NCBI RefSeq assembly: GCF_006345805.1
Contig: NC_042998.1
Span: 110,484,001 to 110,548,000, forward strand
Direction of reading: 5' to 3'
Length of the DNA: 64,000 bases
Origin: Octopus sinensis
Taxonomy: Eukaryota
Position numbers and translations under genes: made by a program. This document shows positions 34,770-61,925 of the stretch, one piece after another. The notes beneath the pieces were generated by a model, which saw nothing but the letters and a program-made list of their open reading frames with translations, was not told where the DNA came from and did no database searches. The stretch's first letter is position 1. Each line of letters begins with the position of its first letter.

Positions 34770-37058
34770 TTTTTCTTCTTTTTATTTTATTTGTTTCAGT
34801 AATTTGACTGCGGCCATGCTGGAGCACCGCCTTTAGTGGAGCAAATCGATCCCAGGACTTATTCTTTGTAAGCCTAGTACATAATCTATCGCCTCTCTTG
34901 CCGAACCGCTAAGTGACGGGACGTAAACACCAGCATCGGTTTTGAAGCGACGTTGAGGGACAAACACAGACAAACAAACATATACATACACAAACACACA
35001 CACACACACACACACACACACACACACACACACCACACACATATATATAATATATATATATATATATATTATATATATATATAGATATATATATATATAT
35101 ATATATACGACGGTCTTCTTTCAGTTTCCGTCTACCAAATCCCCTCACAAGGCTTTGGTCGGCCCGTGCCTATAGTAGAAGACACTTGCCCAAGGTGTCA
35201 CGCAGTAGGACTGAACCCGGAACCATGTAGTTGGTAAGCAAGCTACTTTCATTTCATTTTATTTGCCATAAACGCAGTACACAGAGTAGCTGCGGGCTCG
35301 ACAAACACATTAATGAATGAAAATGAAATAAAAGGAATAAATGAGAGACGAAACCCAACACCCGCCGATTCGATTTTTCTCGAAAACATTTTCTCCTTTT
35401 TTTAAACCTATATGAGGTTTCAAAAAGGAGGCACTAAAACCTCTTACTTAACATGATTTTTTTAAACAAAAGAAAACACACAATTGAGGTTATATACCAC
35501 TACCAATAATGCAATAATGAGGTTTCAAACCCTCTAACGAGGCTTTTTCACCTCCTACTCATCGATATATCCATCAATGTATCCATCATTGCCATATATA
35601 TATATATCCATCATTATCTTCAATGCCGCTTGAGCTCCTGTACCCTGCCATTTCCCATGCCTCATTCATGCACGAGACATATGTCGTGTAAGGGCCACCC
35701 GGCCATATGCGAAATTCCTCTTTAAATCTTTTAAGCTTTTCCCACACGGAAAACCTTATAACGTCCACAGCGCTCTGCGGAGGTCATTCGGGATCCCGTG
35801 TGAAAGCCATATCTACCGTCTCTTTATGTTTTTCTACTATTTTTCTATCTCCCAGCCCTTGTAGAAAAAGGATAATAAATTCATCATCTTTAAGGGTGGG
35901 GATCGTTTCTTCCACTGTGGGTGGCACAACTTCACGACATGCAGACGGCACATCATCCTCCACCTTCTTTCTTTTTTTTCATTTCTTCCTGACTTCGGTA
36001 GAGTGGAGCTCTTCCGCTTTGTCCAGAGTCTGTTCTTCACCTCCCGAAGCCTTAGGGTCTTTCGGTGGGCAACGATTGTTGACCGCCTACTTCCTTTTTA
36101 ATCCTTTTTGGGTTGAAGAGGCTTCAGCCTCCTCAACCACAGCCTCCTCAACCACAGCCTCCTCTCCCTTTGACCGAGTAGGGGAGGTGGCATCCAGTGA
36201 CTGTTCCAGGTCCTTACCATGGTCCTGGGGGCAGTTATCTTTAATGTGGCAATCAGATCTGTTGTGGCCGATGGGGTCCACAGGGTCAAAATCGCTTTTG
36301 ATCCTTCCCAATCAACCGCCGGCGACACCCTTATATTTAAGAGCCTGGGCCCGCCAGCCCCAAGGCCTCGTCGGATGGTATCTTCGATCCAACCCACCTC
36401 GGTGCCTGGGGGTGACCCACATACCCAGGCTCTTATTAATTTCCTCCCGTAGTACAACGGGTGGAACAGAATTTCGTTGCCCTCCAAGGGCTGGCTCGCG
36501 AAATTGCATGCCTCCTCCGGTGTCAAACAGTAACCATACTGTTGCATGCTTGACACCGCGGGATATGTATTTCACAGAGGAAAATTGACTTTCAGTTCTT
36601 TTTCTATAGTTGGTTTTGGGAAGACGGTGATGGTATCAAGCACTCTAGAGTAATTTCTAACAACTACCACCCTCTCCTCCATATCTTTTAACCACTGCTT
36701 GGGTGGGATAATTTCCTACTCCAAGACAGGGTTCTTCGTTTTAAATTCCTTCTCTGCCATGTCCAAAAAGAAAAAAAAACAGTTAAAAAGCAGTTCATAA
36801 AAACAGTCCATCAAAATATTAAAACCGAATGAAAATAAAATAAAAACTATATAGAAGAGAAAGAAAAGAATCTGAAATTAAAATATTGAGAAAAAGAATG
36901 AACAGTTTGGAGGACAAAACATCGAGTAACCTTGACAACGTTTCTCTTTGTTCTTTTTTCTATTCACGAAGCCATAGCTCGCGTACTCTCTCTATAAGCA
37001 ACCGGCAACTAGCGAATCATGCTGGGTAAGCAAGCTACTTACCACACAGCCACACCTG
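34770..37058 (-). mobile_element. SINE family B copy split by the ORF1-only insertion (parts 34770-35248 and 37025-37058)
   Basis: The body and most of the head end at ggtaagcaagctactt (35233-35248); the same 16-mer recurs at 37025-37040, followed by the rest of the head (accacacagccacacc). Confidence 0.9.
35249..37024 (-). mobile_element. ORF1(gag-like)-only retroelement 1 (1776 bp, HAL1-like), 16-bp TSD
   Basis: Disrupted ORF from the ATG at 36760 to ~35586 (FHPLYYGRKLIRAWVCGSPP, HIKDNCP knuckle remnant); no ORF2; ends aataaaatgaaatga, then the TSD. Confidence 0.8.
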
Positions 37059-37097
37059 AATATATATATGAATATATTTGAATATTTATACAGATAA

Positions 37098-37530
37098 ATA
37101 TTCAAAGTGTTAAAGATGGCAACAAACGTTGAGGCAGCGCAAGAATCTCAAGTCGTATACAATATTATTATTGGAAAAACTCAGTCTTACAGCTCTTTCT
37201 GGGATATCCCCGAGTATGGGATATTCCGTCATTACAGACAAATAGAGAAAATAAGGAAAATGAGAATGATATATCTTAATGAGATGACGACATACATGAA
37301 GGGAATAAATGAACCAGGAAATGGAAAGAAAGAAGAAAAAAGAAGCATAAAAGTTCATAGTTCAAATTTTCGAAGTTATAGAAACAAGAGCATAAGTTCT
37401 TAGATGCAATCCTGCGTAGATCTATGTGGGATAAAATCATGATATAGTAGACACCCAGAGAAAAAAGACGAACATATCAACATTCAATAAAAGAAAGGTA
37501 GTGGAGGTGGCTCTTAAGTAGTAAAAGAAT
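37098..37530 (-). mobile_element. ~430-bp hammerhead-bearing repeat, copy B
   Basis: Reverse complement GTCT-gtaATGA-CGGAATATCCC-ATACTC-GGGGATATCCCA-GAAAgAGCTGTA-AGAC (37184-37239). Confidence 0.8.
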
Positions 37531-59100: not shown

Positions 59101-60117
59101 TGTATGTATGTATGTATGTATCTATCTATCTATCTATCTATCTATCTATCTATCTATCTATCTATCTATCGTTCTATCTATCTATCTATACACACAAAGA
59201 CACACATTCACACACAAAAATATATTCATATGCACGCGCGTGTGTGTCTGTATTGTCCCGTTATGAGTTTAGATACAAGAATATTTTTCCATCTGAATCA
59301 AGCAAAATGCTATAAAGAATTCGATAACTAAATCTGTACGTGGTGGCCCATCTAAAAATAATTCGCTTAATCTATGTTAAGTCATATCATCGCGTCTTAA
59401 AAACTTGAAGAACACATTAAATAACGTTGTCATAGATATGTCAGATTTGAAAATAAAATAGAGTAGCTGTATTCATCTACTACCCTTAAATGTTATATAT
59501 TCTTATAAGAATGTGGCCCAAACACTTTTTCTACTGTGTAACTATTCCAACGACCTCCCACGATGTGTAAATATTCCACATCAGAACTCCAAGCACGTTA
59601 GTGAGCGAACTGCTATTTGATCACCTACGAGGCAGAAATAGCCACCAATTCCCCCTTAAATTCCGTCCCACCTTTTTAAAAAGAGATGGCGTTTAAGACA
59701 GCATCGGAAACAAAAGCCAGAGGTATACTCCTTTAGAACTCACCTGGAATTAAACAGCTAAAGAATGAAATGATCCTCCTAAATACTTTTAGTTTGTCGT
59801 ATATAATTTCTTTACCCTTGGAAAACGTTTCGTATTGTTCTCCTTTTATGTATCTCACACAACCTGTATAGCTGCAAATTTTAGTATGACCACACTTTTA
59901 TTCTCAAACTTAACAAATCAACTTTGACTCTTAATCCACTTCTTGTATCACAATATTTCTATTTCCTATGAAAGATAAAGTAGAACTGGATGGATTTCTT
60001 TGACTCTACAATTACAAAGAAGGTGGTAGAGCATGAATTATTGAGCCTGTAACAATAATTCTGTGGAGTATTCGTTAGTGGAAAATAAAATAAACGAATA
60101 ATATAAATGGTGATGAT

Positions 60118-61925
60118 AGGCACAGCGTGGCTGTATGGTAAGAAGCTTGGTTCCACGCATGCGTTATCCAGCAGTTGTTGTGTGAATTTGTTGAGAGTCG
60201 GACGGTGTTTTTCGGGTTGCTTAGAAAATGTATTCAGACCTTAACGGTTCTGAGTTGTCTTTAGCAGAGGACGAGCTGGTAAAGGCGGTCATAAAGATGG
60301 ACGGAGTGTTGGAAAAGACAAGGAGTTTTGCTGAGGCCATGGAGATGAAGCGAAGGGAGTTGGCTTTAGCTGGTCTGAAGGAGTATGAGAAGATGGTACA
60401 GAAAGTGGGCGGCGACGTGAGGTTGCCTCCACCCAAAAGGAATTATGGAGTGAATGGAGAGAAAAACGATCACTTATAAGGTGTTCTCGTTAAAAGGGAA
60501 AAAAGGCCGAGCAGGTGGAAGCTGAAATGCAAAAGACGCTAAAGGAGCAGTCAAAGGAAATAACATAGATAACTAAAGGATGGAGATATGGGACAATGGT
60601 CGTCCGATTTACGACAATAGAGGATGCGAGGAGATGAAAGCAGAGGAGGTAGTGCTTCTGCCCACATACCTTGGAAGAAAATCTTTCAAGGTAATGGTCG
60701 AGCAATCCCACCTGATATAGATGTAGCTTGGTGGCAACGACTGTAATTGCTGGAAGCGATGTGAAGGTGGCTGTCCTTGAAGCCACAGAAACAGGGGGGG
60801 GGGAAGGGAACACACTAGAACTAATTATACAGGCGGAGGAGGGAACAACTGGAGAGTTTGACAGAGACGGTGACGTTGGGGAAAATTGTGCTGAGAGCGT
60901 GGGTAGAGGGCAGAGTACCACATTGTTTTAAATGTGGCCAAAGGGGCCACATTAGCGCATGCTGCTCTCTACAGAGGACAAAAGCAGAGGAAACAGTTGT
61001 GGAGACGGAAGAGAAAAGAGAGGAAGAAGACAGACGGAGGAAAGGAGAACAAGGAGGAAGAACGGAGAGTAACAGAGAGTAGAAGGAAGAAAACTGAGTG
61101 TGATGTGGTACCCTAGTCCAACTCCATCCTACTCAAAACCACTCTGAACCCCCCCCCCCCATACACACAACAAATCCACCCACCTCATTTCCCCACAGGA
61201 AAGAAGAAAAAAAAGCAGACACCTCAGAATTTAGAAGACCCCTTCCCCGATGGAAAAGGTTACGAGAGAGTGCAGTCATGGAGCGATAGCGGAACTGGAA
61301 CAGAGACTAAAAGGAACTTAGGACTCAGACACGTCGAGTGGTGTTGCACGGTGAGGGATGAGTAGCACACTCTTCAAATTTTCATTTTCAACTATTACGC
61401 ATGTTATCATAATTTTAATTTCTTTCTCATGTTCATTTTCATGTGTCATTCATAATATCATATTTTATTTTCATATATTTTTAATTGTTATATATCCCCA
61501 CGTGTTGTAGTGTCCCCTCTATGTAAAGCCTTCATGGAAAAATATTGAAATAAAGAAGCTTCCTTCCTAACCACATGGTTCTGGGATCAGTCCCACTTGG
61601 GCCGGTCTCTTTTGTAATAGCTTTGGGCCGAACAAAGCCTTGTGAGTGGAAAATGAAAGAGTATATATGTATATGTGTGTGTGTGTGTGTGTTTGTGTGT
61701 GTATGTGTGTGTGTGTTTGTATATATATATATATATATAGGGGGTTGCATTTCTTTCCCCACCATCACTTGACAGCTGGTCGGTGTGTTTACATCTCCGT
61801 AACTTATAGGTTCAGCAAAAGAGACTACTTACAAAGATTAAGCCCGAGGTTGATTTGTTCGACTAAAGGGGGGTGTTGCAGTATGGCCACAGTTAAATGA
61901 CTGAAACAAATAAAAGAATAAAATA
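60118..61925 (+). mobile_element. SINE family B copy split by the ORF1-only insertion (parts 60118-60154 and 61553-61925)
   Basis: gcgtggctgtatggt-aagaagcttggttcc | 1.4 kb | aagaagcttccttcc-taaccacatggttctggg, followed by the normal body. Confidence 0.88.
60155..61552 (+). mobile_element. ORF1(gag-like)-only retroelement 2 (1398 bp, HAL1-like), 15-bp TSD with 2 mismatches
   Basis: Disrupted ORF from 60228 to ~61100: acidic/basic helical N-terminus, LLPTYLGRKSFKVMV.AIPP and the zinc knuckle CFKCGQRGHISAC (60921-60960); no ORF2; AATAAA at the 3' junction. Confidence 0.82.

Follow-up and report, generated by a model that had tools for sequence, protein, structure and literature searches.

A 64,000-nt stretch of the Octopus sinensis genome (contig NC_042998.1, positions 110,484,001 to 110,548,000; the window, numbered from its first nucleotide) contains two derivatives of long interspersed elements (LINEs) that lack the second open reading frame (ORF2). 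Both interrupt a copy of a short interspersed element (SINE), and they do so at the same nucleotide. The two insertions, E1 and E2, their target-site duplications (TSDs) and the separated parts of the host SINEs are as follows.

35249..37024, minus strand: E1, ORF2-less LINE derivative of 1776 bp, 3' part ending ...TATGGCAAATAAAATGAAATGA
37025..37040, minus strand: 5' copy of the E1 TSD, AAGTAGCTTGCTTACC in element sense, identical to 35233-35248 at 16 of 16 positions
35233..35248, minus strand: 3' copy of the E1 TSD
37041..37058, minus strand: 5' part of the E1 host SINE head, with the box-A-like TGGCTGTGTGG, ending GTGGT
34768..35232, minus strand: rest of the E1 host composite SINE, with SINE-B body to 35104, a (TA)n/(CA)n microsatellite and the 3' module X at 34768-34966
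60155..61552, plus strand: E2, ORF2-less LINE derivative of 1398 bp
60140..60154, plus strand: 5' copy of the E2 TSD, AAGAAGCTTGGTTCC
61553..61567, plus strand: 3' copy of the E2 TSD, AAGAAGCTTCCTTCC
60118..60139, plus strand: 5' part of the E2 host SINE head, ending ATGGT
61568..61921, plus strand: rest of the E2 host composite SINE, with body to ~61652, a microsatellite and module X at 61757-61921

E1 and E2 are inserted at the same nucleotide of the SINE

Read on the plus strand, both copies of the E1 duplication are GGTAAGCAAGCTACTT, and the duplication is exactly 16 bp long, since the bases next to it no longer agree (on one side, T vs G). The E2 duplication is 15 bp long. Its two copies agree at 13 of 15 positions, and the SINE consensus, CTTGCTTCC, is one substitution away from either of them. 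With the inserts removed, the E1 and E2 loci gave a gap-free, colinear alignment with intact SINE copies, in which both TSDs start at one column, GTGGT^AAG in SINE sense. This column lies just 3' of the box-A-like motif and 5' of the box-B-like GGTTCAGTCC, and both elements are oriented in the sense of the SINE. An earlier note on this DNA, made from the letters alone, had proposed the shared nucleotide, the GTGGT^AAG start and the common orientation, and all three were confirmed by the TSDs and the reconstructed empty sites.

We found no DNA similarity between E1 and E2 (the best blastn match was 25 nt, E 0.007), and the host SINE copies share only ~70% identity. Thus, the two are independent insertion events, as had been supposed. 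A single segmental duplication was ruled out by the lack of DNA similarity between the elements.

The target is the 5' module of a composite SINE

Patterns drawn from the SINE head matched the window 7 and 6 times, against 0.04 and 0.01 matches expected. Besides the two hosts, the following copies were delimited.

12551..12708, plus strand: unoccupied intact SINE copy, empty site at 12563/12564
55655..55804, plus strand: unoccupied SINE copy, 5'-truncated at GTGGTAAG, without the upstream head
9339..9456, minus strand: unoccupied diverged SINE copy
8114..8169, minus strand: further SINE copy that aligns with the reconstructed sites
42761..42892, plus strand: further SINE copy that aligns with the reconstructed sites

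Two of these had been listed as empty sites. The one at ~12563 is indeed an intact, uninterrupted copy; the one at ~55662 starts exactly at GTGGTAAG and therefore presents only half an empty site. The repeat previously called SINE family B likewise held up as the target but not as a complete repeat, since it forms just the 5' module in a ~450-bp composite. In this composite, a 160-bp head and body is followed by a (TA)n/(TG)n microsatellite and then by a ~200-bp module (…GACAACCGATGGTGGTGTGTTTACGTCCCCGTTACTTAGCGG…GCTCCAGCATGGCCGCAGTCAAATGACTG…). Its parts occur together in constant order and orientation at 12551-12850, 34768-35248 (minus strand), 55655-56096, 61553-61921 and 34034-34288 of the window, and at 19286-19796 of an O. 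vulgaris locus described below (L002).

The box-A-like and box-B-like motifs are both present in the SINE head. A link to tRNA, which the description of the head as tRNA-like had implied, was unsupported: no part of the window was called as a tRNA by ARAGORN, and the intact SINE copies had no match to the Rfam tRNA model even at E<=10.

E1 and E2 retain decayed ORF1 but no ORF2

Three-frame translation revealed one degraded reading frame in each element. In E1, a 264-nt 5' untranslated region (UTR; 36761-37024) is followed by an ORF1 relic (36087-36760) that is broken by stops and one or more frameshifts, and by ~840 nt of 3' sequence. E2 has a 73-nt 5' UTR (60155-60227), an ORF1 relic (60228-61365, stop at 61363-61365) with at least five frameshifts or stops, and a 187-nt 3' UTR (61366-61552) bearing the lineage motif GTCCCCTCTATGT...CTTCATGGAAAAATATTGAAATA. 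The E2 relic also encodes a CCHC knuckle, CFKCGQRGHISAC, which Pfam matches weakly. When full-length ORF2 was used as the tblastn query, neither E1 nor E2 yielded an ORF2 remnant, even at E<=10. At 1.8 and 1.4 kb, the two elements are therefore ORF1-only, as described earlier, and each is present once in the window.

A 293-aa open reading frame runs antisense to E1 (35707-36588, plus strand). It is of low complexity, rich in Ser and Leu, has no exact match in the assemblies index and is probably spurious.

The ORF1 relics belong to one protein family

At the protein level, E1 and E2 gave only a marginal BLASTP match (E 5e-4) with the common motif L-P-x-Y-x-G-R-K. Over the N-terminal 205 residues of A0A0L8GU38, an O. 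bimaculoides gene model that is chimeric with a C2H2 zinc-finger gene, the stitched E2 protein shows 57% identity. An exhaustive phmmer search with this segment of A0A0L8GU38 returned 25 proteins among 1.84 billion representatives; the 20 that were looked up come from O. bimaculoides, O. vulgaris or O. sinensis, or are unnamed MetaClust entries or Logan contigs. A word-indexed search with the stitched E1 ORF1 yielded no homologs.

We then built a hidden Markov model (HMM) from the Octopus ORF1 proteins and ran it on the six-frame translation of the window. The HMM matched the pieces of E2 colinearly (best E 3e-17) and matched E1 at E 4e-7 and 1.5e-3. E1 and E2 are therefore diverged members of one ORF1 family, and the earlier designation of the two as unrelated does not hold; they also share a 3' motif with the wider group, as detailed below. 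The region past the E1 knuckle showed no significant BLASTP similarity to the C-terminus of the L002 ORF1, and a conserved C-terminal domain is not claimed for E1. The same HMM detected a third relic of the family.

19005..19478, minus strand: ORF1-family relic with the motif ILIPSYLGR (HMM E 6e-11)

This relic directly adjoins an unrelated reverse transcriptase (RT) relic (RGIFQGDCLSPLLF…, ~18650-18990, minus strand), and no junctions are kept.

Pfam recognised just a weak CCHC match in the ORF1 proteins, with a CCHC knuckle in P0017 as well as in E2. An AlphaFold2 model of the intact member P0003 (mean pLDDT 75, core 85-93) predicts two tandem beta-alpha-beta domains that resemble RNA recognition motifs (RRMs), followed by the knuckle. 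The top Foldseek matches of this model in the PDB were two-RRM proteins, namely NONO/PSPC1/SFPQ and IMP3 RRM12. The family thus appears to combine RRM-type domains, as modelled, with a CCHC knuckle, as in ORF1 of the Tx1 clade.

Six of the Octopus proteins (P0001, P0003, P0004, P0009, P0012 and P0021) are LINE ORF1 copies annotated as ordinary or chimeric proteins, for example 'EPM2A-interacting 1-like' or, where fused to a zinc-finger gene, 'C2H2-type domain-containing protein'. Some octopus gene models labelled 'uncharacterized protein' are thereby explained as LINE ORF1. Some of the intact copies annotated as genes could have been domesticated.

Full-length and ORF1-only relatives occur in Octopus

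The P0003 locus of O. vulgaris (L002) contains three head-to-tail copies of a 5.28-kb LINE that are 99-100% identical (4445-19184 of OX597840.1, running into an assembly gap). In each copy, an ORF2 of 1132 aa starts 5 nt past the ORF1 stop and carries the Pfam domains Exo_endo_phos, RVT_1 and zf-RVT. Its best match among solved structures is human L1 ORF2p (E 2e-71, residues 3-868), with R2 proteins at E 1e-24. A second full-length element lies at the P0012 locus of O. sinensis (L006, CM016872.1), with an intact 620-aa ORF1 (XP_036364761.1, 'uncharacterized protein') and an ORF2. Both have the composition of the L1 superfamily, with an N-terminal apurinic/apyrimidinic-type endonuclease (APE), an RT and a C-terminal zf-RVT, and E1 and E2, which have no ORF2, are tied to these full-length relatives by their ORF1 (HMM) and the 3' motif. 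The L006 element is bordered on either side by (ATT)n (5716-5778 and 11348-11380), which indicates a microsatellite-specific insertion.

Among named database relatives, the ORF2 comes closest to fish gene models in which such an ORF2 is fused to an ORF1 that has two RNA-binding domains of the ZCCHC3 type as well as CCHC knuckles, the same architecture as predicted for the Octopus ORF1. When the Octopus ORF1 profile was compared with the fish ZCCHC3-type ORF1 in hhalign, only the knuckle aligned, and homology of the RNA-binding domains was not detected.

ORF1-only copies of families other than those of E1 and E2 were found in L003 (O. bimaculoides), L007 (O. vulgaris) and L004, with TSDs of 18-20 bp. 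The L007 copy has an ORF1 of 389 aa, ~510 nt from there to the 3' end and a probable TSD of ~20 bp (5906-5925 and 7656-7675), and the L004 copy is flanked by the 18-bp TSD TTGTCTCACAGAAAAACT (3383-3400 and 4271-4290). With a further pair at L010 (1911-1928 and 7925-7942), the TSDs of the group in non-SINE sequence (L004, L007, L010) span 17-20 bp. Head-to-tail junctions recur in L003 (~6668) and L008 (~5755). ORF1-only derivatives are likewise found in tandem, and at most a few bases at such junctions are foreign to both ends.

The 3' flank of the L007 copy (…CATTGATAAGG…) resembles the junction between the L002 copies (…CACTGATAAGG…), which hints at a common target.

Elements of the group end in ...GTCCCCTCTnTGT...CCTTGTGG(G/C)nAAATAAA...GAAAT. 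This 3' motif was found in E2 and in the elements of L002, L003, L006, L007 and L008; it extends over ~55 nt in E2. No further 3'-end motif occurs in the window beyond that of E2, and similarity at the 5' end was not significant. In keeping ORF1, lacking ORF2 and sharing the 3' motif with L002 and L006, the elements are HAL1-like. As to the autonomous partner postulated in the earlier note, there are full-length L1-superfamily relatives that have ORF2 and share the E2 3' motif, and an autonomous element inserted in the SINE was not found in the Octopus loci inspected.

A short Tx1-like ORF2 relic is also present in the window (24026-24564, plus strand). It covers the RT region (aa ~326-600) at 40-56% identity with the Octopus-type ORF2 and lies shortly past the (AAT)n tail of a different LINE.

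A probable target-specific site and its alternatives

We consider it probable that E1 and E2 are dead members of different ORF2-less, HAL1-like families, that these families belong to an Octopus-restricted lineage of L1/Tx1-type LINEs, and that they were mobilised in trans into a shared, target-specific SINE site. Because E1 and E2 lack ORF2, they were copied in trans by the endonuclease and RT of an autonomous relative. The placement in the Tx1 branch is putative and draws on indirect evidence, namely the domain architecture of ORF1, the closest relatives, target-specific behaviour, and a published classification. Sequence-specific targeting is plausible and offers the most economical explanation of a site shared by two insertions (n=2). 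We infer that the shared site reflects the sequence specificity of the endonuclease and that an autonomous family targeting the SINE exists or existed.

Several observations weigh against this reading. There are just two insertions, and the window was chosen because of them. The site is covered by 16 SINE copies across the window and six Octopus loci (~157 kb); apart from the hosts of E1 and E2 all are unoccupied, which leaves 14 empty copies (5 in the window, 9 in the fetched Octopus loci). The SINE junction was absent at the loci of P0003, P0004, P0005, P0008, P0009, P0012, P0026 and P0027, and metagenome contigs scanned with the 3'-junction pattern gave chance matches only, none of which continued into the SINE. 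Furthermore, related ORF1-only or full-length copies in L002, L003, L004, L007 and L010 lie in non-SINE sequence, so that SINE targeting is at most the property of one sub-lineage. The 3' motif does not point to a common partner of E1 and E2, since it is group-wide, and E1 carries only its last ~25 nt. For comparison, a Tx1 family has been counted as specific when the same sequence is present in >20% of its flanks (PMC4494074).

The shared site could be a coincidence or a weak hot-spot, arising from an L1-like endonuclease that has no specificity beyond a loose preference for T^A and acts on a very abundant SINE. The SINE is indeed frequent, with ~7 heads in 64 kb (a site density of ~1 per 9 kb), the nick falls at a TT^A step, and the sample of two was selected for the very feature in question. 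We nevertheless regard coincidence as unlikely. A random second insertion would hit the same nucleotide in the same orientation with a probability of ~6e-5 (7-8 sites / 64 kb / 2 strands); TGGTAAG as a heptamer is found at 11 places in the window, roughly half of which are not in the SINE; the adjacent ACCAC lacks the A-richness of generic L1 sites; and relatives are clearly target-specific, as shown by L006 in (ATT)n. About equally improbable, in our view, is that the template RNA did the targeting, with transcripts of resident copies reading through into the SINE, annealing to other SINE copies and thereby fixing the junction. The principle is established for R1 and R2, in which read-through of the template RNA pairs with the target, and both E1 and E2 lie in SINE sense without poly(A). 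A published account of Tx1 elements mentions co-transcription with the target (PMC4494074). However, such a route would still require a first nick at the site and a separate founding insertion there for each of two different families.

The true target might also be a tRNA gene, as for Dewa, with the SINE being struck as a tRNA mimic. The box-A-like and box-B-like motifs that flank the site fit this idea, whereas the negative ARAGORN and Rfam results described above argue against it, and we give it a small chance, lower than either of the preceding two. Hardly credible is an origin of E1 and E2 from one segmental duplication or gene conversion, or as processed pseudogenes of a host ORF1-like gene. 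That several members of the family figure as ordinary proteins in Octopus annotations would suit a pseudogene, yet a poly(A) tail is lacking, there is a LINE 3' motif, and in the full-length LINEs this same ORF1 precedes ORF2; the motif and the ORF1-ORF2 linkage in L002 and L006 ruled out processed pseudogenes of a host gene. A duplication is contradicted by the lack of DNA similarity, the different lengths and the ~70% identity of the host SINEs.

Proposed mechanism of insertion

If E1 and E2 were indeed inserted by a target-specific machinery, an APE-type endonuclease would recognise a segment of the SINE head immediately 3' of box A. The first nick would fall on the bottom strand at 5'-CT(A/T)CTT^ACCA-3', a position that follows from a sense element with a TSD starting AAG. 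Reverse transcription would be primed at this nick on the 3' end of the element (target-primed reverse transcription), for which the group 3' motif would be the obvious recognition handle. SINE sequence read through into the template RNA may pair with the target and add precision, as in R1 and R2. A second nick on the top strand, 15-16 nt downstream (...TTACC^AAC), would then give the 15-16-bp duplication and a sense insertion. By parting box A from box B, the insertion would inactivate the SINE copy as an RNA polymerase III (Pol III) source.

Comparison with known target-specific elements

Within the Tx1 clade, Dewa targets tRNA genes, Keno U2 snRNA and Mutsu 5S rRNA. Like them, E1 and E2 sit orientation-specifically at one nucleotide of a small sequence resembling a Pol III or Pol II RNA gene. 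Unlike them, their target is a dispersed retroposon that neither ARAGORN nor Rfam recognises as a tRNA, and only ORF2-less copies are found at the site. The mammalian HAL1 elements have an ORF1 with coiled-coil, RRM and C-terminal domains and show no site specificity. E1 and E2 resemble HAL1 in having a 5' UTR, ORF1 and a 3' end without ORF2, and in depending on ORF2p in trans; they differ in the type of ORF1, which is predicted to have two RRM-like domains and a CCHC knuckle, and in their apparent site specificity. We know of no earlier case of a SINE serving as a dedicated LINE landing pad or of sequence-specific HAL1-like elements, and no description of a SINE-landing LINE lineage or of such elements was found in the searchable literature. 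The novelty lies in the SINE-head target, in the cephalopod host and in ORF1-only passengers that show apparent site specificity; the concept itself is established.

Tx1-clade elements target piggyBac, Mariner, LTR elements and Harbinger, with SINEU passengers that share the target (PMC4494074). The closest parallels are Tx1L and Tx1D of Xenopus laevis and the crocodilian Tx1-Mar and SINEU, in which LINEs of the L1 superfamily with an APE insert at defined positions of transposons and non-autonomous partners are found there as well (PMC4494074). The present target differs from those of Tx1L, Tx1D and Tx1-Mar in being a SINE head and not a DNA transposon, and the host is a cephalopod. E1 and E2 also differ from SINEU in that they keep the whole, decayed ORF1 region and are not snRNA-headed SINEs. 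Kibi and Koshi are microsatellite-specific Tx1-clade families (PMC4494074); the L006 relative between (ATT)n is similar to them, whereas E1 and E2 do not lie in microsatellites. Among the recently active LINEs of O. vulgaris, a repeat annotation from 2026 lists a single L1-type group, L1-Tx1, with 13 families and 421 insertions; targets are not mentioned (PMC13282606).

A wider scenario, which we put forward tentatively and hold somewhat doubtful, is a radiation of Tx1-type LINEs in Octopus whose sub-lineages have switched targets (the SINE head, (ATT)n and other repeats), with ORF1-only half-LINEs as regular passengers that inherit the specificity.

Target-specific LINEs serve as natural models of safe-harbour integration and of the way in which APE endonucleases gain specificity. 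If the shared site is what we propose, it would add a new class of target and a molluscan example, a LINE lineage with a SINE as its dedicated landing pad. It would also offer a simple system in which to ask whether a non-autonomous RNA captures ORF2p more readily when ORF1p is supplied in cis. It would further show that LINEs nested in SINEs can be placed non-randomly; no general concept is altered.

Other LINE sequences in the window

The window also contains two 3' portions of another LINE family in inverted orientation (13700-14981, minus strand, and 22090-23840, plus strand). Both terminate in an (AAT)n tail, neither is related to the Tx1-like group, and the C-terminus of the ORF2 contains HIISSCPVLAKKEYIHRHDRVG.

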